Assembly (NCBI GenBank): GCA_047495785.1
Contig: JBLDXI010000042.1
Coordinates: 5,084,001 to 5,148,000 of the forward strand
Reading direction: 5' to 3'
Source of the DNA: Lepidodermella squamata
Taxonomy: Eukaryota > Animalia > Gastrotricha
Length of the DNA stretch: 64,000 nucleotides
Positions 1 through 52,582 of the stretch are shown here, in pieces. The notes under the pieces are model-generated. The model was not told the DNA's origin. It saw only the letters and a program-made list of their open reading frames with translations, and did not search any database. Position numbers and translations under genes: made by a program. The first letter of the stretch is position 1; every line of letters begins with the position of its first letter.

Positions 1-881
1 CCAGCTAGAATTCTGACAATTTCCGCGTGTCTATTCTGAGCAGCAATGTGCAAGGGCGTCCAGCCATTATTATTAATAGCATTAACATCAGCTTTAAACT
101 CTCCCGCTACCATCCTGACGATTTCCGAGTTTCCATTCTGAGCAGCGATGTGCAACGGTTTCGACCCATTACTATTCGCAGCTTCGACGTTGCATTTAAA
201 TTGTCCAGCTAGAATTCTGACAATTTCAGCGTGCCCATTCTGAGCAGCGATGTGCAAGGGCGTCCAGCCATTATGATTAATAGCATTAACATCAGCTTTA
301 AACTCTCCCGCTACAATTCTGACGATTTCAGCGTGTCCATTCTGGGCAGCAATGTGCAGGGACGTCCAGCCATCCACCTCCGATGCCTCAACGTTGCAGT
401 GGAATTTTCCTGCTAACATCATGACGATATCAGCGTGTCCACTTTGAGCTGCGAAGTGCAATGGCGTCCATCCATCTTTCTCGCTGACGTCAACGTCGCA
501 ATGGAATTCACCTGCTAGCATCCTGACGATTTCAGCGTGACCACTTTGAGCTGCGATGTGCAATGGCGTCCACCCATTTTTCTCCTCGGCATTAACGTCG
601 CAATGGAATACACCTGCTATCATTCTGACGATCTTAGCGTGTCCATTCCGGGCAGCGATGTGCAACGGTGTCGAGCCATTCATGGTAGCCGTAGACAGCA
701 CATCAGCCTTGAACTTCATTACCAATAATTGAACAATGTCGTCATGTCCTTCTTGAGCGGCTAAACACAGCGGCGTTAGGCCGTCGTTGTTATTACAGTT
801 CACGTCAATCATTAAAGTTTCAGCCGACAACAGCAATTCGATTTCTTCGGTTTTGTGTTGCCTTATTAGGCGAAATAGCAA
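1..881 (-). CDS. Ankyrin-repeat exon of gene A (at least 8 repeats of about 34 aa, open to the window edge)
   Basis: Manual reverse-strand translation after acceptor tttag|881: LLFRLIRQHKTEE...DGLTPLCLAAQEGH...NGWTPLHIAAQNGHAEIVRILAG. No stop occurs before position 1, which explains its absence from the ORF track. Confidence 0.9.
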   Translation of the reverse strand, partial: MLFRLIRQHKTEEIELLLSAETLMIDVNCNNNDGLTPLCLAAQEGHDDIVQLLVMKFKADVLSTATMNGSTPLHIAARNGHAKIVRMIAGVFHCDVNAEEKNGWTPLHIAAQSGHAEIVRMLAGEFHCDVDVSEKDGWTPLHFAAQSGHADIVMMLAGKFHCNVEASEVDGWTSLHIAAQNGHAEIVRIVAGEFKADVNAINHNGWTPLHIAAQNGHAEIVRILAGQFKCNVEAANSNGSKPLHIAAQNGNSEIVRMVAGEFKADVNAINNNGWTPLHIAAQNRHAEIVRILA

Positions 882-934
882 CTAAATCAAATGGTAGCAC
901 ATTCATTGATAATCATAGAAAAATGTGATAATAC

Positions 935-3830
935 GTTTTCTTCTGGGTTCGGGTCGAGAAATGCAAGATCTCTATTGTGAGCTGTTTCCCTGAGTTCATT
1001 GAAGATTTTATCCGTGTTTTGTTCTGCATTAAGCAAATCCAGCGGTGGCACGCGATGCGAGCTGTTTTTTTCACGAACCATTCGTATGATGATGTTTCGG
1101 AATGCAAACGAATAACCACGAGAATCATCGAAGTCTTTCGGAGGATTGCTTCATAAGTAAGAAGGTAATTCACAAGGCTACATATTAAAAACTTCCATCA
1201 AAACTTACAGTATGATTGCCAGGGTAGAATCAAACTGTACAAATTATTTTCAATAAACTTGAATTCAAAGGAACAGAAATGTCTTACAGGCATGTAGAAA
1301 TTTGCTAATTCGAACAAAGTTACACCCAATGACCACCAGTCGCTTGCCTGAGAGTGATCTTTCCTCTCGAATAATTCCGGAGACTTGTAAAGATTTTCGC
1401 GACTCCCAACCTGTCGATGTTTCTCCCTTGGAGAGCTTTGCGGCACCAATATGACAGTATAGGAAATTGTCAATCCCAAATATCATTACCTTTCGTAAAT
1501 TTTTGCCAACCCGAAACCCCCCAGCTTGACAGACGAGCCGCCATAGAGAAATATATTCTTGGGCTCTATCGCACGATGAAGGATTTCGTTTTCGTGCAGC
1601 ATTGCCACAGCCGACGCAAGCTGCCGGGACCAATCCATCAGCAAATCTTCGGGAATAGGCCCGGCCGATTTCTTCATATAATCATTCAAATTTCCATCGG
1701 AGCAATATTCCATTACAAGATTGTAAATTGCGCCGACAGGACCCATCTCTTCAACAATTAAACCGTTGAAAATATTTTTTCTTCATAGAGATTTTGCGGC
1801 TGACTTACCATCGAATGTCCCGAAAACAGCTACAATGTTAGGGTGCGATAAATTTACTAGTTTCATATCGCTCCTTTTGCCCTATAAAGTAACTCTTCCC
1901 TTTTCCCCACCCATTTTCTGTTGAGAAGGCGAGTTTTTGCCTCATCGCTTAATGCATTATCGCGGCGCGCGGCAGTACTTTTATTGTAAGAATGCGCGGC
2001 TCGTTGCCTTGTATTCTGCAGAATGAATTCATTAGAAAAAGGGTTTATTGCAGTTGTATAGACCGCTTTGCAGAGAATTAAGCAATATATTCGCCAAAAA
2101 ACACTTTTTATGCAAGATAAATTCTCAGATTTTGTTAGTTTTCTCCTTGAAATTCGAAACTTTTGCGATTTTTTGGTTTTTTTCGTTTTCTTAGAATAAT
2201 GAAACCACCAGTTTCTGCCACCGTCAAGGTGTTTGAGAAGGACGTTGGCTTCGAGGAAGTCAAATCCTGGGTGAATAACAATTTCCCATTACTCAGAATA
2301 AAGTTTTCAGGACATTCGGCTGGCAAACGTTACGCATACTACAAATGCGAATATTTCATGAAGCATGGCTTCCTTAGGTGCACGGCGTCAGCGAAAGTCG
2401 TTGAGAACAGCGATGGATCTGTAGCTTTCGTTTCTCAAAATCCACAACATAACCATGAGCAAGATCCCAAAGCGACGAGCAGCAAGTTCTTGCGCATTGA
2501 CCGCACAGCTTCTGCTGTCGTGAACAATTTCCTCAAAGGCTCTAATCCGATTGTCGATCGAGAGCGGCTGCAGTCATCTATCGCACCAAGATACAGATCG
2601 ATGGGTCTGAAGAACCCGCCAGTGCCATCGATAAGTCAATTGAGAAAGGCAATAGCTACACAACGAAAAAAACAGAGAACGAGAAGGCGCCGATTGGAGC
2701 TCCATCAAAATAAGATCCAGATTCCGAACAGTACAGTAACAGTACGCGATACGGATTCCGAAAAACGCGAACCATCATTAACTGCTAACATCCTCTGCGT
2801 GGCATTTCTTGTTTACACCGGCTTTCGCCTCCTGAGCTAATGGGCGACTTCAAAAAAGCAAAGCCTCGAGAGCCCCTAGGGCAGTGACGCAAAACATGCT
2901 GCATGTTAGCATGTTACTTGCCTGTCGAACGTACGCATGCTTCGAGAATGAATCGTTTCAAATTTTTTGATCTGCGCATGACTTCCTGAGTATAGGCTAT
3001 CAATTATCCCCAATGTATCTCAATAAAAGTGCTTCAAGTTATCTTGAAGAGGCACCCGTCCAGTATTTGAAATAATTATGATTCTTGACACAATGCCATC
3101 GAAACCATACAACCCAATTGTGATTGACTGAGCGAGGAATATATTCAAAACTTAGCAGTCAAAACTTCAGTTTTCTGTTCAGCTGGCAAGGGAGTGCACT
3201 ACCGACTACCGAAGGCCTATTTGCCGTGAAACACCCATTGAAAACAACTTTCATTAGGAATTTATGATATTTTAGTTGACTTTCTGCAGAATACCGGGCA
3301 CCAACTGCAAGAAAGCCCGGTTTTTATGCAGAAAGTCTGAATTATTATGCAAGATAACCGCTGCCAAATTGCTCATCATGCATAAAAAATGGAGCGCACG
3401 TGCGATTTTATGCAAGATAACTTATTGATTGCTCGCATCTTATGCGAAATAGTAGGCAACAAGGGTAACGCTTCTGCCATACTTCTGCTGCCCGAGAAAA
3501 AAATTACGCCGCTCGCAAACATATGAATTACTACGGGGCTGTGCTCATACATAGGTTTTTGAAAACGTTCCCTTATAGGGCAAAAGGAGCGATATTCTAT
3601 ACGATAACATCTCAAAAAGGGAATTCTGAGGTATGATACGCAGCTTTACCTCGTCTCGACTTAATTTGATAAGCCGTTCGGCAAAATTAGGTTCTTTGTC
3701 ATAACACCGTTGAATCCGGCCGCGGTTGAAAGTCTTAACAACATAAATTGCGGCGTCTTTGTATCGACTGCACAGTATTGTCTTGCCGAAGGTACCAGCC
3801 TCCAACTCCTTTTCACGTTTGAACTTGTGG
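935..3830 (-). CDS. Pseudokinase domain PK3 of gene A (several exons, transposon inside)
   Basis: ORFs 3545-4108 (GTFGKT..VVK..SRDE), 1486-1746 (LVMEYC..LHRAIEPKN..KLGGFG), 1198-1479 (YKSPE..DWWSLG) and 887-1081, linked by short GT-AG introns. Confidence 0.8.
1869..3591. mobile_element. Non-autonomous TIR DNA transposon inserted in a kinase exon
   Basis: Perfect 19-bp TIRs CGCTCCTTTTGCCCTATAA (1869-1887 and 3573-3591) flanked by ATAT on both sides (1865-1868, 3592-3595). Removing the element restores the exon start NMKLVNLSHPNIV, with the same spacing as in the other three kinase domains. Confidence 0.9.
2199..2840 (+). CDS. Transposon-borne WRKY/FLYWCH (WRKY-GCM1 fold)-like zinc-finger protein with a basic tail
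   Basis: Intact intronless ORF with YYKC-x10-C...HNH, followed by RKKQRTRRRR; AATAAA near 3022. No DDE domain is visible. Confidence 0.65.
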   Translation: MKPPVSATVKVFEKDVGFEEVKSWVNNNFPLLRIKFSGHSAGKRYAYYKCEYFMKHGFLRCTASAKVVENSDGSVAFVSQNPQHNHEQDPKATSSKFLRIDRTASAVVNNFLKGSNPIVDRERLQSSIAPRYRSMGLKNPPVPSISQLRKAIATQRKKQRTRRRRLELHQNKIQIPNSTVTVRDTDSEKREPSLTANILCVAFLVYTGFRLLS

Positions 3831-5545
3831 ATTGAGGAAAACTCTAACTTTCTTGCTTCAGCCAAGGGCTCCTTAATTGCTATCGCCTGTCTGATGAATG
3901 GACTGCTCAGCAGAACAGCAGCCGTAGCTCTCTGGGATTTATCTTTAACGAGCATTGAAAGAACGAAGCATTGGTACTCCTCTGAATAGTATCGATCTGC
4001 GTCGAATGGTTTCGGGTCATTCCTAAAAAATAAAATTGCGTGCTTTTCCACAGTAGAGGCTGTATAATTCGAACCCCAGCAATGCGGACAGCGGGCTAGT
4101 CCGGACAATTTTAGGCCGACGGTCAGAGTTTACCTTATAATATGCGGACATCGCGCTTTTTAAGGGGGACAGCCCTTTAATGCGGACGCGCACTAATACG
4201 GCCAGTTTTCTAGCTAAGCACACACTGTCCATATGGGTATTTTAGGCTCTTTAATGCGGACACCGCGGACATCCCCTCCATGTCTCCGAGTGGGTTCAAG
4301 ATATTGCCACAAATCTTCACTCAGATAGCCTCAAGTTGCAAATTATGCGTAGAAACCACGCAAATCTAATCAAAGAGTTCGCTAATTAGAAAAGCAAACA
4401 GTATATACACCTGCGCGTAATTGTGGGCCTAATCCTGTCCGCTGAGGCCGTCGGAATATAGGGGATCGCCAAATGCGGACAGCGCGCTAATGCGGACAAA
4501 TTTTCCGCGACCGATGGTGTCAGAATTATACAGCTTCTACTGTATAATATGAGTTTATTGGATGAAAGGGCGGAAATGTTTGATTCGACACTCCAAACCT
4601 ACATCATAATGTCAGCTAGGCTCTCAAACTGAAAAAAATAAGAATTATTTCAAACGCTCATTAGCAATAGGTATCATTTGCTTACTGGCAAGTACAAATT
4701 TGCTAGCTCGAAGAAAGTAACGCCGAGTGACCACCAGTCACTCGCCTCTGAATTGCTCTTATTATGGAAAGTTTCAGGCGCCTTGTACATTGTTGTGCCA
4801 ATTCCAATCAATGAGCTGCTCGTCGACCTGTGAAGCATGGGATTCAAGCTTCTCTTACTGTGCTATGACTTTTATTAGAAATCACTCGCCTGCAGGGGGT
4901 CTAGCCAGGCCAAAATCGCCAATTTTAACAGTTCTCTCGTCCTCGCACAAAAATATGTTTTGCGGCTTAATGTCATGATGCAACACACCCTGACTGTGGA
5001 TCTTATCGACTGCTGACACCAACTGGCATGCCCAACCGTGCAAGAGCTCCTCATGTATTGTCTCGTTTGCTTCTGTTTTTCGTCTGATGTAACGACCCAA
5101 ATCACCATTTGCACAATACTCCATCGCCATATAGTATATTTCATCCCCTAAACGCCAATCGTAGAGCGCTTCATCCGGCTGCCCAAAGCGTTCTGTAGTG
5201 TGAAATTCAGCTTTTATATGCATCACGTACATTCCACCTACCTGAAAATGCGCCATAGATATCTACAATATTAGGGTGCTTCAATCTGCCTAATATTCTG
5301 TGCTGGATACAAAACAACAAAAAACTAATGAAATTGGAAACGCCCATAATGCTATGCCTCATCTCATCGCAGCTCAGCTTTATGATTTTCATCGCGCCTT
5401 CAGATTGGTAGCATCTCAGAATCTGGTTCAAATTGACAGCCTTCACGGCGCATTTAGCGAAATCATCTTTCCTTTGGCAAAGCCATATGCAGCCAAAAGA
5501 TCCCCTGCCCAACAAAGCGATTTTGGGATATTCGTGGATTGAGTG
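3830..5545 (-). CDS. NEK-like Ser/Thr kinase domain K2 of gene A, catalytic motifs intact
   Basis: GRGSFG, AVK, HPNIV, MEYCANGDL, HHDIKPQN, KIGDFGLA, YKAPE and DWWSLG across ORFs 5207-5899, 4882-5256 and 3545-4108 plus small exons. Confidence 0.85.
4051..4542. mobile_element. Tc1/mariner-type MITE, copy 1 (in a gene A intron)
   Basis: TIR CAGTAGARGCTGTATAATTC ... GAATTATACAGCTTCTACTG followed by TA; close copy at 10838-11336. Confidence 0.85.
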
Positions 5546-6224
5546 GTGGGTGGCTTTTGCGTCAACAGAACGGAGTTCCGGTTTCGCTCCTAGAATTTCG
5601 GCAATATTAGCGTGCCCTCTACGTAATGGAATACTAATCGGTGTCTCCCCATCCTTCCTCGCTAGTTGCGCTTTAGCTTCAAATTTCTTTGCCAAAACAT
5701 CGACTATATCAGCGTGCCCATTCTCAGCTGCAACGAACAGCGGCGTCTCGCCATTGTTTGCTGCTGCATTAACGCCAGCTTTAAAGTGGCCTGCAAGTAA
5801 TTCCACCAATTCAGTATGACCTTTTTCGGCGGCGAAGAAAATTGGAGTCCGACCATCCGCAGCCTTAGCCTCGATGTCAGCGATGTCAGCATTCCGCAAC
5901 TAATACTTCGATAATTTCGCTACGCCCGCATTTCGCCGCTATGTGCAACGCAGTTCTTCCGCAAAAGTCGACAACTTCAGGATCAGCATTGAACTTCCGA
6001 ATTAAGAGTCGCACAATGTCAACATAACCTTCTTGGCAGGCTATCATCAGAGCAGTGAGGCCTTCATCGTTGACGTTGTTGATATCAAAGTCGGGCTCCT
6101 TTTCAGTCAGGACTTCCTCTTTAATATTGTTGACATCGACCTCTGGCTCCTTGACATCGTTCAACAATCGAAGCAACGCTTCGATTTTTCCTTTATCACC
6201 CTGCCTCACCCATTTGAAAATTTC
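5546..6224 (-). CDS. First ankyrin block of gene A (5 repeats, frameshift near 5890)
   Basis: GLTALMIACQEG, GRTALHIAAKCG, GRTPIFFAAEKG, GETPLFVAAENG and GETPIS in ORFs 5886-6209 and 5207-5899. The frame changes at a duplicated GCTGACATC. Confidence 0.85.
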
Positions 6225-6277
6225 CTAATATAAACGAGGGATTGTTATTCAAACAGGTTTTTGCTGTCCCGACAAAC

Positions 6278-7807
6278 CTTGAGAGCATCGGCTTTGCTAA
6301 TGGAAGCAGTGCTCTCGACTGCTGTTGATTTTTGTTGCTCTCTTTGTTCCACCTCCGCCGTATTTTCCTCGAGGAACTTGCAGTGGTAGAGATCGACTGC
6401 GTCTGCCCTTTCCGAACGCTTCTTCGCCAACATTGAAAAGACGAAGTCGCGGTATTTCGGCGAATATTTCTGGTCAAAAGGTTTGGGTTCTTTCCTGTAT
6501 AGAGATCGAAATTGAGGTTGTCGAAGTATTATTCTTTTTCACACATTCTTGAAAACCAACATGGACCGCTCATCCAGATGGTAAGCAGCGGCCATTATAG
6601 CTACGGACCAAGATAGTTACTAAACGCAGGAGGGATACGTTAAACCCAACTGAATGCATTAAGGATCTATTGATAGGAGCTATGCTTTCCAAAGAATGCA
6701 GGCGTAATGTGACTCACTGAAAAATCTCAACAGTTGAGCTTTCATTATTGCTGAGATTTGCGCGCTACAGAAAGTAGAGGGGAGGAAGTACAGTGCTACG
6801 ATAAACCTACAAAATCCCGTTTAAACCCTAAAACTTACTTCATTATATCACGTGCAGAATCAAACTGTTAAATATTTTCTTGAAACAAGCTTTCCCATTA
6901 AATACAAAACGAACTGGTAATTCAAAGTGGGCCAACTCATATAAAGTAACACCAAGTGACCACCAATCACTTGCTTGAGAATAGACTTCAGAATTATACA
7001 GCTCCGGTGCTGAGTAACTAGGGAAGATGGCCCCCGAGTCTTCAACCGTCGGCGACAACCTGGCAAAGCAGGAGATTAATTCTGGTTGGAGGCGTCAATA
7101 ATCGGAAGATATACCGGTCTAAAATCGTGCTAAAACCAAAACCCCCAAGTTTGAGCATGCCTAGTTCGCTGCCATCGTTACATACGAACATGTTAGCCGG
7201 CTCAATATTTCGATGGAGCGCGCCCCATTAGTGAATAGCTGCAACAGCCGAGACCATTTGTCGAGCCCAGGTCTTGATCAAGTCCTCCGGAATTCGGTTA
7301 TTTTCAATCCGTCTCAGATTAATCAGTGCCTTGAGATCGCCCCCAGCACAGTACTCGGTCACTAAATAGTAGATGTTGTCGCCCAGCCTCGGCGGTCTCT
7401 CTCCAAGCTTCCAGCCTTCTAGGTCGCTTACTTCCTTTGAAATTCAGAAAACAGTTAAGCTTAAATAGCTCTTAATATTGAGCATTAACCTTCAAAAGCT
7501 CCGAATACACTGAGAACATGGGGGTGAGCCAACTTGAGGCACTTGATATGCTAAGATAAAAATAGAAGGTTTAAAAGATGCTAATCGAACATTTTCAAAC
7601 CTCTTCGCGAAGTAGCGAAACAAGTTTATTAGACAAACGCTCGTTGTCGCGATGTTTCCGACGAATTTCATCAAAATTGACTGCTTTTACTGTGAAGTCA
7701 GAGAATTCCCCATCACGCTTGCAAAGCCAACGCGAACCAAAAAGTCCCTTTCCCAATAGTTTAATTATGTTGAATTGAAGAGTCGAACAAAACTTGTCTT
7801 CCATCAA
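6278..7807 (-). pseudogene. Pseudokinase domain PK1 of gene A with a premature stop
   Basis: ORF 7595-7807 (GKGLFG..TVK), then exons reading LAHPHV and YYLVTEYCAGGDL..AAIH*WGALHRNIEPAN..KLGGFG, then ORF 6843-7058 (YSAPE..DWWSLG). Confidence 0.8.
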
Positions 7808-8169
7808 TCAAGCTAAACGCTAAGCATGTAAAATGTAAGCAACATAAATATTGAATGCCAATCTACGAACAATTATCTTGAATTAACTAATTAATTGAAT
7901 TAATTAGTTGTCTTGAAACGCTCAAAGCTCAACAGCACAGCCATGCATTATTTATATTTAAAAATTTTCATAGTAACATGATTCATATGTCCTACCGCTA
8001 TAAGCGATCCTCCCAAATGCCAATTGGTTTAACCCAAATGGCAATATGCCAAATATAGCGTTATAAGTCATATTGGGGTAACCCATTTGAAACAGTTGGT
8101 TGTCTATAACGATAACGCCTTGCACAATAACGCCTAATCAGCTCTATTCATTTTTCTATTCTATTTCAA

Positions 8170-9249
8170 ATGCCAAGAGCTTTACTGCCCCGTGACGCTG
8201 CTCAGAAGAAGCTGTTCATAACGGCTTGTTCTCAGGCTGGCACTATTGCAGGGTTATCTGCAGATGGTAAGCACAACATCAGACAGTTGTTCTGTGTCGC
8301 TGAAGGCAAGCTGAAATACCGAGAAGCTGAGAGGAGAGATGCGGATAACTGACATTTCTTGATCTGGGAAGGCTTTATCGCAGAAGATTGAATCTTGGAA
8401 GCTGAAGCTTAGGAAAGGAGAAGGTGTTTATCAGCTCAATTTCGGGCCCATATTAGTTTCGTCCGGCCCCCAAGCGTCGGTTGCGCAATTGGAGGATAAA
8501 AGTGGTTAGAGCTGTTTATCAGGTCATCGAGATTCTTTCGACATCGTTTACAGTCAGCGAAGAATTATTTGTTCAATTCGAGAATTATTTGAAGAATCGA
8601 ATTCTGAGAAAGAAATCTGTTAAGCGAAGGTTCGAATGAAAGCCGATCGCATAGATGGCGACTTGCGACTTCGTTTCTATCTCAAAGATGGATCGAACCA
8701 GCACTGATCCGAAAACTGTTTGGCGAAAGTCTTTTCTATCAAAAGCCACTTTTGGTACACGAGCAGGTATCATGGATGCTAATTTTGTCCTAAGCGAACT
8801 TTTCATCTATCGTGGTGCCGCTTTGGACATTGCGGAGTTCGAAACACCACAGAAAGAAAATACCAAAGAAGAAAGTTGCGTTGACTACGGCCCTTCGAGC
8901 TGTTGCTTCGTACGGGAGTGTTTGCAAATACCAGGGTGATTGTTCAGCCGACCGCTGTCCTTGCAAGAAAAACGGCTTCAAGTGTGCAAAAAACTGTCAC
9001 CCGGAGATGGCTTGCTTGGCACAGAAAACTGAAAAGAGAAGGCAGGCGTGGCGGCCGCGGCTGCCTTCGACGACGAGGAAGAGCAGCGGGAGGGATTTCG
9101 ATGCAAGACCGGATATGCATGCCCTCGACAAAGCGTTGCTTGTACCGCAACCATCAGAAGAAATGCGGATCGTCCTGTCTTTGCAGCACGAAAAACTTAT
9201 GTTTCAAGGAAAGTTGAAAACTTTGAGACCAGTGGACGTTGTCTTGTGA
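8170..9249 (+). pseudogene. Degenerate transposon-derived ORF resembling the C-terminal part of Ginger2/KRBA2-type integrase proteins
   Basis: Frameshifted pieces DRTSTDPKT..GTRAGIMD and the Cys-rich VCKYQGDCSADRCPCKKNGFKCAKNCH. Stops occur upstream and no catalytic core was recognised. The family call is from memory of the motif. Confidence 0.45.
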
Positions 9250-9312
9250 CTTGTGACGAATAAAAAGCTGGATTACAGGCAAGAAATTTAATAGAGAGTC
9301 AATAAGGTCATC

Positions 9313-10730
9313 GCTAGCTGCATCCGCGCGCTGGGTGCATAGAATTTGCTCGCTGCACCCGAGGGTGCAGGATTATAGCTAGTTACACCCGGAAGGTGCC
9401 CGAAAATAGCTGCGTGCACCCGCATCTGGGTGTGACCATTATGCTACGTACATTCGATAGGACGGTAATGAAATCACGGGTGCAGAGAGAAAAACCGCTA
9501 CACCCAATTGACTGCGCGCGGCGGCTAAAGAGCCATTCATTGCGCGCTAAGGAGTTAATGATCTGTCCGGTGCCGCTGATCAATGTTATCAGTTCAAGAG
9601 TCGAGGCCTTGAAGATAGAGCTGAAAGCGCAGGTCGATTTCCAGTGCGCAAACCGAAAGCAACATCAATAGGATTATGACGGTCGCGAGTTGGGCGCTAT
9701 ACCGCCGCCGCTACCTTTCGCTCGCGTTCATTACCACCAATAATCAATCTTCTCGAGCCGGTCTTCAGCGACATGAAAAATTACATCAATAACCTATTAC
9801 CGCCCGGCTTCCTGCCTTGAACTCGTGCCCCCTTTGCTTGATTTTCACCTGGAGATCAGTGTTTCCCTCGTGACCCGCAGAATGCACCATGACGGCTATG
9901 ATTGCACCCGCAGCGCCAGAGTCGGAGCGGAAAAGAAACAAAGAAATCGTAACCGCCAATCGTCGACTTCAAGGCCGGCTGCTCCACTTCCGGGTGCCCT
10001 ACTCCAACTGGGGTGACTGTAGGCAGTGGGGTGACTTTGACAATTGGAGGAATAGTAATTCCTAATTCCTATTCCCTCAATTCCTACTCTTTATTCATCT
10101 TCCTCCAATTCCCATTCTCTAATTCCTATTCCTCCAAGCTTTGACATGCCAAAATGGGGTGACTCTGGCATGCCTCGCGAAAGGAGTACCGAGTTGGATC
10201 GCCTGGAGGAAGGGCAATATAATAATGACATATGATTTCATATTCAATAAGTCGGCTTCGGTTTAGCCGTCACCGAAGTTTCAATTAATTCAATTAATTC
10301 AATTAATATAGAAATTGAAAAAATGCCGCGACTTTACATATTATGTCCTCTCCCAGAATGGGTTGTTATGATGCGCATTGTGCACATCCAGGCTGGCCTT
10401 TCCTTGGGCTATCCAACGGTACCCCACTCACGAGGTCCTTACCTTACCATCTTCGATTTTTGGAATGCCAAAGTCACCCATTCTGGCAAGTCAAAATGAC
10501 CCTATTGTGCAAAGCGCGCTAAGTCACCCCAGGTACGTAATCTCGCTAGCTCGCATTTTACCTTGTTTAATTACTTCTGTACACCTTGCCGCACCGACAG
10601 CCGGCTTTTTCCTAATTCCTTATTGTTTGTATATAGGGTGTAACGAGTCAAATCGTCGCACCCACACTAACGCGCGGTATAGGGTGTAGCTAGCAAATCG
10701 GATGCACCCGCGTGTGGGTGCAAATAGCAC
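9313..10730. mobile_element. Degenerate, nested inverted-repeat element(s)
   Basis: TGCACCC/GGGTGCA-type subterminal motifs in opposite orientation at 9313-9430 and 10635-10730; inner inverted pair at 10141-10174 and 10462-10494. Confidence 0.4.
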
Positions 10731-10837
10731 ACTAGAATTATTAAATTGCTTATCAAGTAGGTTTTTAGTGCAATTGTTCCTTAGGGTAACTCAATTGCCA
10801 ATTGGGGCCGATTGCTCATAACGGTACGACACATATA

Positions 10838-11336
10838 CAGTAGAAGCTGTATATTCCGAACCCCAGCAATGCGGACAGCTGGCTAGTCCGGACAATTTAA
10901 GACGGACAGAGTTTACCATATAATATGCGGGCATCGCGCTTGATAAGACGGACAGCCCCTTGATGCGGACGCGCACTAATACGGCCAGTTTTCTAGCTAC
11001 ATTCGCACTGTCCATGTGGGTATTTTAGGCTCTTTAATGCGAACAGCGCGGACATCCTCCAACTACGAGTCTCCGAGTGGGTGCTAGATCCGAGTAGGTC
11101 ACAAATCTTCATTTGCTTAGCCTCAAGTTGCAAATTATGCGTATAAACCACTCAAATCTAATTAAACAGCGCGCTAATTAGAAAAGTAAACAATACCTGC
11201 GCGTAAAAATGGGCCTAATCGTTTCCGCTAAGGCCGTTTCAGGGGGCGCCTCGGAATATAGGGGATCGCCCAATGCGGACAGCGCGCTAATGTGGACATA
11301 TTTTCCGATGGTGTCAGAATTATACAGCTTCTACTG
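10838..11336. mobile_element. Tc1/mariner-type MITE, copy 2
   Basis: TA|CAGTAGAAGCTGTATA ... TATACAGCTTCTACTG; colinear with 4051-4542. Confidence 0.85.
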
Positions 11337-11627
11337 TGTATATAATCTGCCTTTTGCGGTCTTTGCTCCAATAACGTTCTTCTTTCGTACAAATCGAAAG
11401 AGAGTCCAGATAAACGTAAATAATCAATTTCAAGTTAAAGTCTAAAAAAGAACACACGCCAATTATCAACTGGGTCAATAATATTATTATTTAGTCAATA
11501 AACAATATTTATAGGAGGAAAAGTTCTTACAGCTGTTTTAATTACACCAGCCGCTAAAAATAAACATATCTATCGGCCTAAGCGTGATTATCTGCGTACT
11601 TTAACGCGTTGCGGGCTGGCAGTATGT

Positions 11628-12740
11628 CGCGGGATGGGCGACAGAACGACTTGCCTAGAATATAAATAAATGGCGTGAAACTCAAGGGAAGGAGGCGAAA
11701 CTGGATTGTTTTTGCACCATCTGGCGTTTAGAAATTTTTTGAAAAAGACCTCAAAAGTGTGTTCCGAAATTTCATCGATTTTTTGATCGATTTTTAGGGG
11801 ATAACTATTGAAATACGAATTTCCACAACTTCATAATTTCCAGTTCGCCTAAACACGTTTTTTTCATAACGATAGGCTATTTTTTGAAAATTCGACCTTG
11901 ACACATGTTTATTTGGCGCGAAATTTAACATTTTATGGTATTTTTGCCTATAAAACAGAAATTTTGAGCTTTTTTGCATGATTCACTGTATTTGCAAACA
12001 CGTTTCACTTGGCGTTGCTTATTTCGCAGCTTATTTCTCGTTATGGGGAACCTCAAGCACCAATAAATTAAAACGCTCTTTACATTATGATTGAAACAAT
12101 AGACACCAAGATCAAAATTCGTCAAAAATTAATTATATTTACATAACATGAATTTTTTATTTCGACGGGGCAATTTTTTCATTCAAATAACTCGAAATCA
12201 ACACGAGCTCTGTCGCGAGAGGTCGAAACATGTGATCTTTTTCATATTTAGCCAAAAAATCAAAAGAAAAACGAATGTTTTCCATAGCCAAAATATTTCA
12301 AAAATAACGGAAACTTTGACAATTTTTAAAATTAAAGTTTTGGAGTGATTTTCAAAAATAAATAGCCTATCGTGGTCTACTCCTTGAGACGAGTAAGAAT
12401 ATATTTTCGGATCGAAAATCGGAGGCCCAGGTGATGAGTTATCCCCTACGATACTTTTGCATGCAAAGATGCAGAGCGATTTTTTCAATTTCAATTTTTT
12501 GCACTTTCGTAAAACACACTTTTCGATGTCTTTTTCTCGCTTCTGTGTGCTTGGACACGGATTAAAAACCATTGTTTATTAATCCAGTTTCGCCTCCTTC
12601 CCTTGGTGAAACTAACTTTTCGCATCTCGGCCAAGTCAGTCGTGTGTATGATCGCTAGAGCGCCAGTTTATTTCTGTGAATCAAATGCATTGCGCCATCT
12701 GTTTCTATTCTAGGCAAGTCATTCTGTCGCCCACCCCGCG
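11628..12740. mobile_element. MITE related to the 14804-14997 family, split by a nested insertion
   Basis: TIR CGCGGGATGGGCGACAGAACGACTTGCCTAGAATA versus TATTCTAGGCAAGTCATTCTGTCGCCCACCCCGCG. The internal part 12610-12710 matches the interior of the 14.8-kb MITE. Confidence 0.7.
11683..12605. mobile_element. Non-autonomous element with 8-bp TSD (P-element- or hAT-like)
   Basis: Perfect 25-bp TIR CAAGGGAAGGAGGCGAAACTGGATT; TSD GTGAAACT at 11675-11682 and 12606-12613. Confidence 0.9.
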
Positions 12741-12809
12741 TCGCCCCATGTGTAAGCGTTGCATGGTACAGGAGCGTGTATCGTTAACATAGAGCTAGCT
12801 CTATGATTG

Positions 12810-15800
12810 TTAATGACGCCAAATGTTGTTAGTATCACCCTCAGTAGCGGCTTTGTTCCTAGCTGTGATTGTTTCAACTAGAAACCGTGCAATGTCGAAG
12901 AAACCATTTAGGGCAGCGATGCGATAAGGCGTGATGCCATTATTGCAAGGAATATCGATGTCTGCGTTGAATGGAGCGTTGACAAGAGCTTTCACTATGC
13001 TAATCCATCCTGCTTCAGCAGCAATGAAAATCGGCGTCGCGCCGTCTACGGCTCGAACATTAACATCCAAGTTGCGGCATTGTGTTATCAACCTAAATAT
13101 GTCGTCATGGCCTCCTTGAGCAGCTGCGTGTAAAGCCGTGTATCCATTGGATGCGCAAGTATCAACTTTGGCTCCTTTTTCGATCAGAACTTTTGCCGCC
13201 TTGTATTGACCGGATATTACAGCGATGAATAGCGGGCTTCTTCCCTTCGAGTCGCACTTCTCAATTTGAGCTTTGAATTTTTCGACTAAAAGTATGATCA
13301 TGTCGACGTTATCTTCTTGTGCAGCAGCCATGAGAGGCGTAAAACCTTCTTCGTTAGTCATATTTACGTCCAAAATGCCCTTCTCTAAAAGGCTCGTCAC
13401 TTGAATAGTCTCATTCATTCGGGCATGTCGAAAGAGCATCAATAGGTAAATAAAACTACAAATTATCAATTATCATAAAAGCAATTCGCGAGATATACAC
13501 TTTGCGCATCTCGAGAACTACTATCGCTGACATCCCCAAGCGCATTTCGGTTGACATTATTTCTCCTCAGCCAAAAATCACTCTCCAGTAGTCGTTGCGC
13601 TGTCGCTCTCTCAGGGATGTTGCGGTGTAACATTGACCTAACGAACTCTCTGAATTCCAATGAATATCCGCGATTCGAATCGAAAGGTCTCGGTTCGACT
13701 CCTTGTCTGTAAGATTTTTCGAAATAGCAATTTCTCATTTCTACCAAGTATTGTTTCTAGCAATAGGCAGTGGTCGGTCCAAATCTCAGGGGGAAAATCG
13801 AGCATTTTGCCGAAAATGTGCAAATAATAAGGGCCCCCTTCCCCCGTACTCGGAACACTGACATGTGTTATTTTTAATCTGAATGAACAAATCCTGCGTC
13901 CTTAAAAGTGTAAAATTTACCCACCCTTTTCGCAGCTAACATTCATTTAGAGTCAAATGTCTGATCTCTCCCTAATTGACAGAACCCTAGATCTATGAGT
14001 GATAAATCTGCCCGGTCATATTGCATTTGCCCAACTTCCGTCCTCGATATTCATTTTTGTTTTTTGACACACTTCAAGCAGCAAGCAACTAGGCCAGTTC
14101 TCGGGAAGGATGGAGCTTAAAAACTTACTTTACGGCATCAACGTTTGGAAACTGTATAAAAAACTCACAACTTACTTTCACTTCCTTAGCAGTCTTAAAA
14201 TCAAGAAACTAACCGGTCTATAAAAGTGTGCCGCTTCGAACAGCGTAACTCCGAACGACCACACATCACCGGCTGTGGTATGAAGCCCAATGAAAAATTC
14301 CGGCGGAGCGTATTCTTGAGTTCCGAAGACAGTGAGCTCTTGAACAGGCTCACTACTATGATTTCCATTTATCAACACAGCCGATTTCCAAAAACTTGAA
14401 GGCTTACTTGGGAGCGAATCTCCTGGCAAAACCAAAGTCACCAAGCTTCACACATCTGCTAGAAGTGAGCAGTATGTTATCAGGCTTGATATCGCGATGT
14501 TGCACGTTCATCTTGTGAACCCTATCGATAGCTAACAGTAACTGCCGTGCGCAATTGTATAGCAAGTTGATAGGTATTGCCTCGTTGGCCTTCTGTTTGT
14601 CATCGATTAGCTTCCGGAAGCTGCCTCCTTTGCAATACTCCATAACGAGATAATAAATGTCGTCACCACTTTCTCCGCGTCCAAAGCCGCACAAATGTGA
14701 GTATTTTTCTATTACCGTATTTGCTCGTACATAAGGCTGACACTAATAAAAGGCGGACTCCCTCTATTCGTGTGCATCCTAATATTCATGCAGTAGTTCA
14801 TATCGCGCCTTCCGCGCCAGAACAGTGTGCCGGAAATAGAAACAGATGGCGTAAAACTAACGTTTTGCATCCTCGCCAAGTCAGTCGCGTGCCTGATCGC
14901 TGGAAAAAAAAGTTGAACGCCAGTTTTTTTCTGCGCATCAAATGCATTACGCCCTTTGTTTCTATTTCCGGCATACTGTTCTGGCGCGGAAGGCGCGATA
15001 TACAACCTTATATTCGGATTTTAGTTCAAGAGGGTCATTTTTTCGAAATGTACACCAACATAAGACTAGTCTTAAGTACGAGCAAATACGGTAAGCAAAA
15101 TCCAAGCATTTCATTAAACTATGAGGGCTCCGGATGTTTTTACATATTTATGTACAGTTTTTCAACTATTCGTACATATTTTCAGAAAGGGGAAAATGCT
15201 TTCTGCCATCAATTTTGGGACTTTCGCCATCAAACCGGAAAATTCAAATTTCACCATCAATTTTGGGGTTTTTACCATCAATTTAGGTACTTTCGCCAAC
15301 AAAATGGATTTTCTCGCCAACAAATCCGAAAATACCTGCTGATTTAGTCCAAAACTGCTCAAAACATTGCCAAATGGCGTACCATCGTTAGCGCAGAGGA
15401 ATTGGAGCATGTCCATGTCACCTTTAAGGTAATACTATAGGGTAATAATAAGTAAATGAAAATATGCAATTTTACATTTTTACTTTTTCGCATGACTATG
15501 GCATTTACTTCAAAATTGACATGAAACATTCCAAATCCGACCAAATCGCGCCAACGATATGGTACGCCATTTGTTAATGTTTTGAGCAGTTTTGGACCAA
15601 ATCAGCAGGTATTTTCGGATTTGTTGGCGAGAAAATCCATTTTGTTGGCGAAAGTACCTAAATTGATGGCGGTTTCGGTTTCGTTGGCGAAAGCCCTAAT
15701 TTGATGGTAAAAACCCCAAAATTGATGATGAAATTTGAATTTTCCGGTTTGATGGCGAAAGTCCGAAAATTGATGGCGAAAGTCCCAAAATTGATGGTAG

Positions 15801-16376
15801 GAAAATTTACACCCTTTCAGAAATATGTACAGCTTTCGACTATTCGTAAATAAATAGGTACAAATATTTGGCTATTCGGACATATTTTCGGCTTTCAACT
15901 GAATTGTAATTCAGGTTAGGGTTAGGGTTAGGGCTGGGTTGGATTTGAGAATATGTACGAATGGCTAAATATTGGTACATATTTATTTGCGATTAGTCGA
16001 AAACGTGTACATGAGTATGTACGAACATCAACTTCGAAATATGAGAGCCTTGCCTCTAAATTGACCATAAACTTTGATTACGCCTTCGTGCTGGCATTGT
16101 TCCGTCATTTCATACTAGAGCAAAATCGAATCTGCGCGTTTTTATCAGGCAAGATTAGCAATATGATACACTTGCCTCTCCAAGGTGAAGGTCGACTAGC
16201 GTTTTCGCATTATCCCCATGCTCCCTTTGTATCTTGGAAAGATTCACAGCTTTCACGGCATAGAAAGGCTGCAGTTTTTCATGGCTGCGTTTGCACAGCC
16301 ACAAATCTCCATATTGCCCTCTGTCTAGATGATCGATTTTCGTGAACTCTGTGGTAGAACTGAAATTTCTCGCCAT
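12810..16376 (-). CDS. Gene B: NEK-like Ser/Thr kinase followed by 5 ankyrin repeats (paralog of gene A)
   Basis: Exons read DRGQYG..AVK (16376-16176), YEMTEQCQHEGVIKVYGQF (16114-16054), YYLVMEYCKGG..HRDIKPDN..DFG (14708 to about 14408), YAPPE..DVWSFG, PRPFDSNRGYS..RATA, then the ANK ORF 12810-13439. Intron positions match gene A. Three splice sites are non-canonical. Confidence 0.8.
14804..14997. mobile_element. MITE with CG termini flanked by ATAT, copy 1
   Basis: About 42-bp TIR CGCGCCTTCCGCGCCAGAACAGTGTGCCGGAAATAGAAACA; ATAT at 14800-14803 and 14998-15001. A second copy lies at 51839-52030 and a half copy at 18143-18175. Confidence 0.9.
15131..16032. mobile_element. Inverted-repeat MITE with a central (TTAGGG)n-like core, split by the foldback element at 15189-15814
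   Basis: Degenerate inverted arms (GATGTT..TACATA..ATGTACA..TTTC.ACTA.TCG) around GGTTAGGGTTAGGGTTAGGG at about 15914-15933. Confidence 0.55.
15189..15814. mobile_element. Mutator-like foldback element
   Basis: Long near-perfect inverted arms (>200 bp) built of ~20-bp CCATCAA/CGCCAAC subrepeats; 9-bp direct repeat TTTCAGAAA at 15180-15188 and 15815-15823. Confidence 0.85.
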
Positions 16377-50484: not shown

Positions 50485-52582
50485 TTAGCCCAGTCGCTTC
50501 TTCTTGCGACAGAACCGAACTATTACGAGCGAAGCTTGTTGGAATTGGCGAGGGGTGAGGATTTTCATAACAGCTGTCAAGCACATTTCAATATTCAACA
50601 ACAACATGGCTGTACTATGTAAGCGATGCGTCCCGATTATCGGGCCGAAACTATGGGGGAAACTTTCGGCAAAAAAAGCGATACCAAGCGGCAGGTGGCA
50701 TATCGAGTTGATTGTAAACGCTACCAGAGATTGTTGAGCGAAGAAAAATTCACGATGGCGCCACGAAGAGTCATCTGAGCATGTTTGCAAGCTAATTGAT
50801 GCTAACAGGCTCGCGTTGACTCGTTGCATTTTCTTGAAAATCGCCCAGTAATTCATGGCAAGAACTGAAGACGTTGAAAGGACTGCAAAAGAGTAGTAGA
50901 TGAATAGTAGGGCTGAGGTGTTGAAATATTCGGTGAGCTTGTAGTCAAACGCTCCACAAAGGTGTATGTATCTTGAATTGTCCACGGGTAGTGCCTGATG
51001 GCCCAGAATGCTGTATGGATAGACAGTTAATACCGTCGACAAGGAACCGCAGAGCATAAAGCCGAAAGCAACAGTGATCGAAAGCTGTAACACACAAAAG
51101 CACTGGATTAAGAAAAGAGAATAGCAAGAACTCTATTCCACCTCAGGCTTACATTCTCACTTCGGTTTAATGACCCAAACTTTCAAACGGAAACACGCTG
51201 CAAGGGAAAATCAACCGGGGATTCCAAATCTAAACAAGGCTGAGATTCTGATTCTCTTAATTCTTCAAATGCTGAGCTATCATGAGCAGGACTTCGGCAC
51301 GTAACTCTCATCAGCATTTTGGACTGAAATAATTTCGAATAATATATGCTTTCGCTGGTTATGTGTTTCACGCAATTACATAGTTAGGTTAAGATTGCAT
51401 AATATCGATCGAGATACACCAAGTGGCCAAATCGATTCAGATGCGACATGTATCGATTTATTGCATACGTCTGAAGACAGCTAAATTACTGCGCAATTCT
51501 CTCTCTCTCTCTAATTCAATTTCCCTAACCCGATGTCGGCTGTGTTATGACAGCGTGTAACTGTTGGTCATTTCTACGTCACGCACTGTTACACTTGTCG
51601 AGAGAAATTAGGGATAAAGAGGATAATAGCAATAACGCGGAACTCTGTAATCTAGAAATACCCCCTTCCGTTTATAACGAATGCAGATAATTGGGTCATT
51701 TCTCCTAACCTCAGAAGAGACAAATCGCTGCTGTTACCTATAATGACTTTTGTTTGGAATAAACTGAATACCGTGTTTCAATGAATAACAGCCTTCAAGA
51801 ATTTGAACTTTGAACATTAAAATAAGATAGGAACATATCGCGACTTCCGCGCCAGAACAGTGTGCCGGAAATAGAAACAAATGGCGTAATGCATTTGATG
51901 CGGAGAGAAAACTGGCGTCCAACTTTTTTTCTCGCGATCAGGCACGCGACTGACTTGGCGAAGATGCAAAAAGTTAGTTTTACGCCATTTGTTTCTATTT
52001 CCGGCACACTGTTCTGGCGCGGAAGTCGCGATATGGATAGGGAATAGGGTATCAGCTTTCAGCTATTGAAACCTGTTTTCTTTTTAAGCGGAGTGCGTCG
52101 AAGCCGAGACAAACCTTGAGCAGACTGGATCTGTAGTTAGGAGAGTCCGATAGCGCTCGAAGCCGTCGCTCGTAACTGATAATCCTATTCATGTAACACC
52201 CGAAAGGCCCAATCGCTAAGGCTACCCACATTGAAGAGCGGCAAAAACCAGCGTTGAAATTGCCATCGTGCAGCGTTACCAGAAAACCGAACGCGAAATT
52301 AAAGGCCAGCAAAGCGTTGCGCAGGTCATAAATCGCGTTCAGAACAAAAAACTCGCGCTTTACGCCTCGTTTGATATAAACGCCCAGGCTTCCTAACGCT
52401 GATAGAATGATGAATATTGGCGATATCAGAAATGGCAAGCTGTATGCCAGGCGGTCGCTGACTGTTTGAGCAGTTAGATCCGTATACCATATGAAATACG
52501 GCCTGGGTTCATTGTAACCTCGGCCAGATATATTCACCAGTATCCAAGCTCCGTTTATAACGTATGCAACTGATCTATTCAT
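50485..52582 (-). CDS. Divergent class A (rhodopsin)-like 7TM receptor, about 355 aa (exons 52582-52115 and 51084-50485)
   Basis: Seven hydrophobic segments, N-terminal NxS sites, Cys before TM3, DRY-like SYERR, Cys in ECL2, CHLP in TM6, basic tail; phase-0 GT-AG intron. Confidence 0.75.
51839..52030. mobile_element. MITE with CG termini flanked by ATAT, copy 2 (GPCR intron)
   Basis: Inverted copy of 14804-14997; ATAT at 51835-51838 and 52031-52034. Confidence 0.9.

Follow-up and report, generated by a model that had tools for sequence, protein, structure and literature searches.

Kinase-ankyrin genes in the gastrotrich Lepidodermella squamata: a probable chimeric pseudogene within a family carrying tandem kinase and pseudokinase domains

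Kinase and ankyrin genes at the locus

The stretch of DNA analyzed here (the window; 64,000 nucleotides, positions 5,084,001 to 5,148,000 of contig JBLDXI010000042.1, C42 below) comes from the gastrotrich Lepidodermella squamata, assembly GCA_047495785.1. Its first 16 kb contain two genes, A and B, that combine protein kinase domains with ankyrin arrays, and our subject is gene A, which carries three kinase domains and is probably a chimeric pseudogene, together with the gene family to which it belongs. Four kinase domains and their ankyrin arrays had been placed here by a first-pass annotation made from the sequence alone, and Pfam matches on the minus strand were found at the same places. 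All kinase and ankyrin genes discussed for the window lie on its minus strand. By its predicted genes, the region forms the upstream end of a tandem cluster in which at least four genes (B, A, C, and D) share one strand.

The present assembly comprises 121 Mb in 151 contigs. The published L. squamata genome, obtained by multiple displacement amplification (MDA) and HiFi sequencing at 83x, comprises 122 Mb in 157 contigs, and neither kinases nor ankyrin are discussed in that paper (PMC11660948). Domains were called with Pfam on stop-to-stop open reading frames (ORFs) or on exon ORFs. All homology searches were carried out exon by exon, and no spliced protein was used in a search, fold, or tree; translation across candidate splice junctions was confined to a short stretch and served as a reading-frame check only. 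Introns were placed by enumerating in-frame GT-AG pairs between conserved motifs and by DNA alignment with paralogs. Gene A starts at ATG 7804 on the minus strand and is defined by the order of its Pfam domains, PK1-ANK5-K2-PK3-ANK (K, kinase; PK, pseudokinase; ANK, ankyrin array):

6278..7804, minus strand: PK1, a degenerate kinase domain (HRN, GFG) of the kinase-ankyrin (K-ANK) subfamily, with ATG 7804-7802
5579..6224, minus strand: ANK5, an array of ~5 repeats in two reading frames (Pfam; ORFs 5889-6224 and 5210-5899)
3900..5563, minus strand: K2, an active-type kinase (HHD for HRD; DFG intact; Pfam and splice enumeration)
3650..4042, minus strand: K2-PK3 junction exon, a continuous ORF with the end of the K2 C-lobe, a linker of ~25 aa, and the PK3 G-loop and VAIK
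935..3800, minus strand: PK3, a conserved pseudokinase (HRA-IEP-N, GFG; Lys and G-loop kept; Pfam)
1749..3482, strand not assigned: PK3 intron 2, enlarged to ~1.7 kb vs ~60-80 nt in aligned paralogs
1..881, minus strand: C-terminal ankyrin array (Pfam E=7e-112), continuing past the window start

The catalytic Asp residues are absent from PK1 (HRN, GFG) and from PK3 (HRA, GFG) and are retained in K2 (HHD, DFG), which agrees with the earlier assignment of kinases and pseudokinases in gene A. The HHD of K2 stands where 11/11 other aligned catalytic exons have HRD, and the K2 kinase exon is 73% identical to its gene C counterpart. PK3 shares 74-86% identity with 11 other loci; the nearest paralogs of PK1 are active K-ANK genes with an identity of at most 57%. 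Both domain junctions had been reported to fall inside single ORFs, and this is what we found: the ANK-to-K2 junction lies within ORF 5210-5899 and the K2-to-PK3 junction within ORF 3548-4129. The last array, previously counted as eight or more repeats, is indeed long, and the count is corrected here to an ORF of 427 aa, or ~12 repeats by length (34-aa unit), which ends 399 nt beyond the window start.

The first-pass annotation had also described identical intron positions in the four kinase domains. Homologous positions were confirmed for intron 1 (phase 0; follows the alphaC region), intron 2 (phase 1; follows the beta4-5 mini-exon), intron 3 (phase 2; six to seven residues past DFG/GFG), and a further intron ahead of the ankyrin array. 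These introns are mostly 39-60 nt, and phases 0/1/2 are common to gene B, PK1, and K2. Identity does not extend to the whole set, however: the placement of intron 4 is ambiguous, several gene B donors read GC, and the match of PK3 holds for the conserved sites only, as its open path needs a shifted donor. The PK1 introns are 7601/7550, 7490/7430, 7115/7059, one of uncertain position, and then 6278/6224. In K2, one exon ends at 5342, further exons span 5302-5242, 5192-4886, and 4827-4686, and another starts at 4042. In the C-lobes, few residues separate the alphaF motif ELANFYLPV from PKPFD (4686/4042, 1259/1148, and paralogs), and from the exon translations the alphaG region seems to be shortened in this family.

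Lesions and probable recent decay of gene A

Comparison with the paralogs revealed five independent defects in gene A:

7228..7230, minus strand: in-frame TAA in the PK1 catalytic exon (flagged by the genome search as 1 TAA in 7132-7389 and read in the sequence)
5889..5899, minus strand: 1-nt frameshift within an ANK5 repeat, at ~5892; ORF 5889-6224 ends in TGA and ORF 5210-5899 resumes the same repeat
5558..5560, minus strand: GCA in K2 where the start ATG of the paralogs sits (DNA alignment, six paralogs)
5361..5362, minus strand: AT at the K2 intron-1 donor vs GT in 6/6 aligned paralogs (DNA alignment)
3573..3596, minus strand: PK3 beta4-5 mini-exon with a 15-nt insertion and strong divergence (DNA alignment)

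At the position of the PK1 stop, all paralogs have a sense codon (Ser or Lys) within an exon that is one open frame. The frameshift in ANK5 adjoins a 9-nt tandem duplication, and alignment to the gene B array demonstrates that repeat homology persists across the shift. There is no room for a normal intron at ~5892, where only pseudo-introns of 28-43 nt with weak sites could bypass the defect. In the paralogs, a conserved motif in the 5' untranslated region (UTR) precedes the start ATG; in gene A this former UTR reads in frame with ANK5, and ORF 5210-5899 contains no Met ahead of the K2 VAIK lysine. An alternative in-frame GT lies 21 nt downstream of the lost intron-1 donor of K2. With its conserved donor and acceptor, the PK3 mini-exon encodes seven codons followed by TAA (3575-3573), and only a shifted donor at 3640 gives an open path through it. 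Gene A is thus disrupted at sites that code or function in its paralogs, as would be expected of a non-processed, chimeric pseudogene. A single intact triple-kinase frame, as proposed in the first-pass annotation, is contradicted by the TAA at 7230-7228, the frameshift, the loss of the K2 ATG and donor, and the TAA in the PK3 mini-exon. The accompanying argument that the fusions do not depend on a splice model is correct for the junction ORFs, which are continuous, but cannot be extended to gene A as a whole, which is not one open spliced frame.

The decay appears to be recent. Ratios of nonsynonymous to synonymous substitution (dN/dS; Nei-Gojobori, summed per exon) for K2 and PK3 against six paralogs were 0.18-0.31, with 0.18-0.31 for K2 and 0.18-0.25 for PK3, vs 0.12-0.34 for intact-looking paralogs among themselves. 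Since these values resemble those of intact paralogs, and since the 427-aa array has no stop, the inactivation of gene A is best dated as recent. The alignments indicate that purifying selection acted on the K-PK-ANK half of the gene during most of its history and that the defects are late; with an omega of ~0.2, they also clearly mark the pseudokinase as a selected domain. For PK1 and its nearest relatives, synonymous sites were saturated (pS 0.85-0.90) and no dN/dS could be obtained. Where every other pair of junction exons gives a dS of 0.7-1.0, those of genes A (3647-4018) and C (L002:6171-6569) differ by only 0.27, a value suggestive of local gene conversion between the two genes.

We therefore lean toward the view, which we hold to be rather probable, that the triple-kinase fusion is a young chimeric pseudogene. 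A deletion would have eliminated the 3' end of a K-ANK-type gene together with intergenic DNA and the promoter of the K-PK-ANK gene that followed, and would have joined the truncated array of the old, dead PK1-ANK5 in frame to the 5' UTR of K2-PK3-ANK, ~30 nt upstream of the old ATG. The downstream K-PK-ANK member fused in this way would have lost its own ATG, and the chimera would then have decayed. A deletion fusion is the simplest history because the ANK-to-K2 junction is unique (90/90 other N-lobe matches begin after the linker) and because ANK5 is without the conserved C-terminal tail that is present in paralogs. Given the lesions, the three-kinase protein is probably not made.

Several points weigh against a pseudogene. 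The lesions rest on one assembly, ~1100 codons of K2-PK3-ANK are still open, the TAA or the frameshift could be skipped by in-frame GT/GC..AG pairs, though these are weak, and the functional model for the family given below is inference only; gene A may still work through unusual splicing or initiation. Taken to its end, this argument makes gene A a working triple-kinase gene whose stop and frameshift are spliced out with small introns specific to the lineage, or are artefacts of assembly or allelic origin, an outcome that we regard as quite improbable. It would fit the continuous ORFs at both domain junctions and the purifying selection on K2 and PK3, and translation of the K2 N-lobe, now without an ATG of its own, would need the upstream module; in-frame bypass introns are formally possible at 7255/7200 or 7246/7200 and at 5907/5869. 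Splicing at these introns, however, would remove the catalytic loop and one half of an ankyrin repeat; the introns lie in sequence whose homologs in the paralogs are coding, and they have neither pyrimidine tracts nor consensus donors. Because of this homology and the weak splice signals, introns at the TAA and the frameshift were rejected as the principal explanation. In addition, five defects are unlikely to be assembly errors at 83x HiFi coverage, if the assembly is the published one (PMC11660948), and the same architecture was found at no other locus.

Alternatively, the locus could consist of two units, a dead relic (PK1-ANK5) that serves at most as a 5' leader and a K2-PK3-ANK gene expressed from an internal start. 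We consider this unlikely, and it is equally doubtful that such a gene would yield a pseudokinase-ankyrin scaffold that starts at the first in-frame Met past the VAIK lysine and has a non-working K2 N-lobe. That Met does lie just past the AVKAV motif, and the sequence from K2 through the array is open, with a dN/dS like that of intact paralogs. Further pseudokinase-type exon groups with 60-69% identity, seen at the exon level only, suggest that dead-kinase-ANK proteins can be viable. The internal unit would nevertheless be impaired by the lost K2 intron-1 donor and by the PK3 mini-exon, which is disrupted in its conserved frame, and the promoter region upstream of the former 5' UTR would be deleted. 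A recent chimeric pseudogene remains our preferred account of gene A.

The kinase-pseudokinase-ankyrin family and its surroundings

The family to which gene A belongs has two architectures, K-ANKn and K-PK-ANKn. The latter was found in 12 loci, two of which lie directly downstream of gene A, outside the window:

Gene C, minus strand, directly downstream of gene A and outside the window: K-PK-ANK with an array ORF of 276 aa
Gene D, minus strand, downstream of gene C and outside the window: K-PK-ANK with an array ORF of 1223 aa (~36 repeats by length)

Nine further K-PK-ANK loci are located on contigs C2, C7, C24, C32, and C74, each with its own ATG and an active-type kinase. They share the junction exon and the HRA-IEP-N/GFG pseudokinase, their array ORFs range from 629 to ~1500 aa, and in several of them a conserved tail closes the array. 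Overall, array ORFs measure 219 aa in gene B, 276 aa in gene C, 1223 aa in gene D, and from 274 aa (L016) to ~1500 aa (L004) in the other paralogs. The K2-PK3-type junction exon occurs in 13 copies with 60-69% identity and, as judged from these alignments, is the hallmark of the K-PK-ANK subfamily. The PK-type catalytic exon was found in 12 loci at 74-100% identity, with more groups at 60-69%, and N-lobe exons of the wider family number at least 91 in this genome. The sister subfamily, with one active kinase followed by ANKn, includes the nearest relatives of PK1.

In the predicted polypeptide, the K2 C-lobe and the PK3 N-lobe are encoded by one exon and one ORF, as a tandem of kinase and pseudokinase would be. 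Taken together, the 12 loci, the 13 copies of the junction exon, and the purifying selection on the pseudokinase support that the kinase-pseudokinase fusion is real. A genome-wide survey of paralogs and architectures, proposed by the first-pass annotation as a check, bore out one part of its model, with 12 K-PK-ANK loci and a K-ANK subfamily, and not the other, since the triple-kinase plan occurs nowhere else in the genome. The role of intracellular sensors that it also proposed is conjectural. Its suggestion of a birth-and-death family is supported: the family is large and tandem-clustered, its arrays vary from 219 to ~1500 aa, and it contains near-identical duplicates, fragments, and broken copies. 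Near-identical translations were observed for L010 (C7:2293001-2303000) and L011 (C32:106001-116000) and for L006 and L007 (C2, 17 kb apart); such pairs represent either duplication of very recent date or haplotypes that were not collapsed.

The 34-aa ankyrin repeat has a GWTPLHIAAQNGH-type consensus (111 repeats), with TPLH at the position of the Giardia TALM motif; a single TALM was found among the repeats, in the first repeat of ANK5. Variation across the 111 repeats is concentrated at positions 1, 3, 11-12, and 32-34 (also 8 and 15), which we take to correspond to the canonical ankyrin binding surface. Such position-wise variation is typical of ankyrin arrays generally.

Gene B lies upstream of gene A and consists of the following:

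13499..16376, minus strand: kinase domain in five exons (Pfam Pkinase and splice enumeration), with ATG 16376-16374
12810..13455, minus strand: ankyrin array, a 219-aa ORF of ~5 repeats with its own stop codon (Pfam Ank E=7.7e-40)

The gene B kinase keeps the VAIK Lys, HRD, and DFG and is predicted to be active. By its architecture, gene B is placed as a K-ANK member, and its earlier description as a kinase with five ankyrin repeats agrees with the Pfam kinase match followed by the 219-aa array. To link kinase and array, splicing must use a GC donor at 13505 (intron of 50 nt) or else a GT-AG intron of 89 nt, 13498..13410. GC is present at three gene B donors, at exon ends 16176, 16054, and 13506 (GCAAGT, GCAAGG, and GCAAAG, respectively); if these donors are used, the introns retain the family phases. 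Aligned K-ANK paralogs carry GT at the donors 16176 and 16054, and the same is assumed for 13506 by analogy only. Three GC-AG introns in one gene are odd under a working gene and under random decay alike.

A number of repeats and mobile-element traces were observed in and around these genes. The enlarged intron 2 of gene B contains a palindromic, MITE-like (miniature inverted-repeat transposable element) sequence of ~200 bp with inverted self-matches (14799-15001), a second copy of which lies at 51835-52035 of the window with 93% identity. An interspersed repeat of ~500 bp is present in K2 intron 4 (4050-4546) and between genes B and A (10837-11340) in the same orientation, and the two copies are 82% identical over 520 nt (blastn). 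The enlarged PK3 intron 2 contains a plus-strand ORF of 225 aa (2163-2840), Cys/His-rich toward its N terminus and basic in its tail but without a family match, which may be a mobile-element remnant; this ORF and the plus-strand ORFs 8655-9671 and 10378-10689 gave no Pfam match. Genes C and D flank a pol fragment of a long terminal repeat (LTR) retrotransposon (L002:609-2777, minus strand; 7.2-9.4 kb to the left of the window start) that encodes RNase H, an integrase zinc finger, and an rve core and has the same strand as both genes. Between this retrotransposon and gene D is an isolated kinase C-lobe exon fragment (NPKQF..YSEKFKCFVLSLL; L002:282-506, window -9718..-9494), which by its sequence is another dead piece of the family.

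Kinase affinity, possible function, and known systems

The first-pass annotation had called the kinases NEK-like, and this description is only partly supported. A profile of 12 catalytic-loop exons searched against solved structures placed NEK1 (76 bits), NEK7, and NEK2 at the top, with RAD53 and GCN2 at ~69.5, and single exons produced a tie between GCN2, NEK1, NEK2, and PDK1. The following exon, which covers the activation segment and alphaF (DWWSLGV motif), instead matched the AGC kinases RSK and PKA best, both alone and as a profile, and no NEK was among the matches listed; the N-lobe exon gave weak matches to CDPK. The NEK catalytic residues (VAIK Lys, HRD Asp, DFG Asp) are present in gene B and K2 and not in PK1 and PK3. 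On these matches the family is best described as divergent Ser/Thr kinases with a NEK-like catalytic core and with affinities that differ between exons.

Relatives of the kinase-pseudokinase tandem outside this genome were sought with the junction exon. A word search of 5.8 billion protein clusters with the junction ORF returned nothing at E<=1e-5, neither foreign nor transcript-derived relatives of 107-340 aa, and a junction-exon profile searched against 1.84 billion representative proteins returned 19 weak matches and no close one. The top three profile matches were discarded as spurious repeat proteins (Ig, fn3, LRR), and two others were two-kinase proteins without ANK, at E ~1e-4. Descent from plant tandem kinase proteins or from JAKs is not borne out by this profile, in which no kinase relative scored better than E=8e-6.

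For the intact members of the family, a functional model can be proposed in which the ankyrin array would recruit a partner, the active kinase would signal by phosphorylation, and the conserved dead kinase, with its G-loop and Lys kept, would regulate or scaffold the active one, by analogy with JH2 in JAKs. It is possible, although we would not expect it, that the kinase-ANK family serves cilium and cytoskeleton regulation as NEKs do, with an expansion that reflects many ciliated cells and not immunity. The NEK1, NEK7, and NEK2 matches of the catalytic-exon profile fit this idea, as does the Nek expansion in ciliates and the presence of Giardia Neks at flagellar and cytoskeletal structures; the eight flagella and dual spindles of Giardia may explain part of its Nek expansion (PMC3218828). 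The NEK assignment is, however, inconsistent across exons, and arms-race families, too, would fit the high turnover, the pseudogenes, and the variable arrays. A far bolder proposal is that the K-PK-ANK genes are the equivalent, in an animal, of the tandem-kinase immune receptors of plants. Ligands from pathogens or from self would then be bound by the variable ankyrin surface, the active kinase would be gated by the dead one, and gene A would capture a step by which deletions between tandem neighbours assemble higher-order multi-kinase receptors. This analogy is in our estimate a very long shot; if it were true, gene A could even still work through rescue splicing.

As it stands, at least 12 genes in one animal genome unite an active kinase with a variable ankyrin array and with a conserved dead kinase on which purifying selection acts, and we found no published description of that combination. 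Kinase-ANK proteins with dead kinases are already known; new is the addition of a conserved tandem pseudokinase to that plan, in an animal. The family constitutes a natural series for the study of how pseudokinases regulate neighbouring kinases. Gene A is useful mainly as a dated example in which deletion between tandem paralogs shuffles domains and the resulting chimeras die.

One of the closest known systems is the Nek-ankyrin expansion of Giardia lamblia. The first-pass annotation knew of no such architecture with a NEK-type kinase, but Giardia has 198 Neks, 71% of them catalytically dead, and in 67% an N-terminal kinase is followed by 1-26 ankyrin repeats (PMC3218828). That family, like the one described here, is large and of fast turnover, with mostly dead copies and with repeats gained and lost between relatives (PMC3218828). 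The two differ in that Giardia Neks have one kinase domain and no kinase-pseudokinase tandem, their repeats belong to a TALM subclass while those of L. squamata lack the TALM motif as a rule, and the L. squamata family sits in an intron-rich animal genome, unlike that of Giardia. In RIPK4, ANKK1, and ILK, one kinase or pseudokinase is joined to ankyrin repeats, and the order in gene B is the one reportedly found in RIPK4 and ANKK1. RIPK and ILK, however, belong to the TKL group, which was not represented by either of them among the 60 best solved-structure matches listed per search, and RIPK4, ANKK1, and ILK have short, fixed arrays and conserved single-copy orthologs, as opposed to an expanding family.

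For the tandem itself, JAKs likewise have a conserved dead kinase domain (JH2) beside an active one (JH1) and plausibly regulating it. The order in JAKs is pseudokinase first, whereas in L. squamata the kinase comes first, and JAKs are tyrosine kinases with FERM-SH2 and not ANK, with no sequence affinity beyond the kinase fold. Plant tandem kinase proteins such as wheat WTK also join an active kinase to a pseudokinase and form a clustered, rapidly evolving family (PMC11006675), and by analogy they would be the closest functional parallel. They derive from plant receptor-like kinase lineages in which ankyrin arrays are rare, whereas the L. squamata K-PK genes carry arrays, and their immune role has been shown genetically, whereas the L. 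squamata family is known from sequence alone. This family carries the kinase-ankyrin theme further than Giardia and the theme of tandem kinases further than plants and JAKs.

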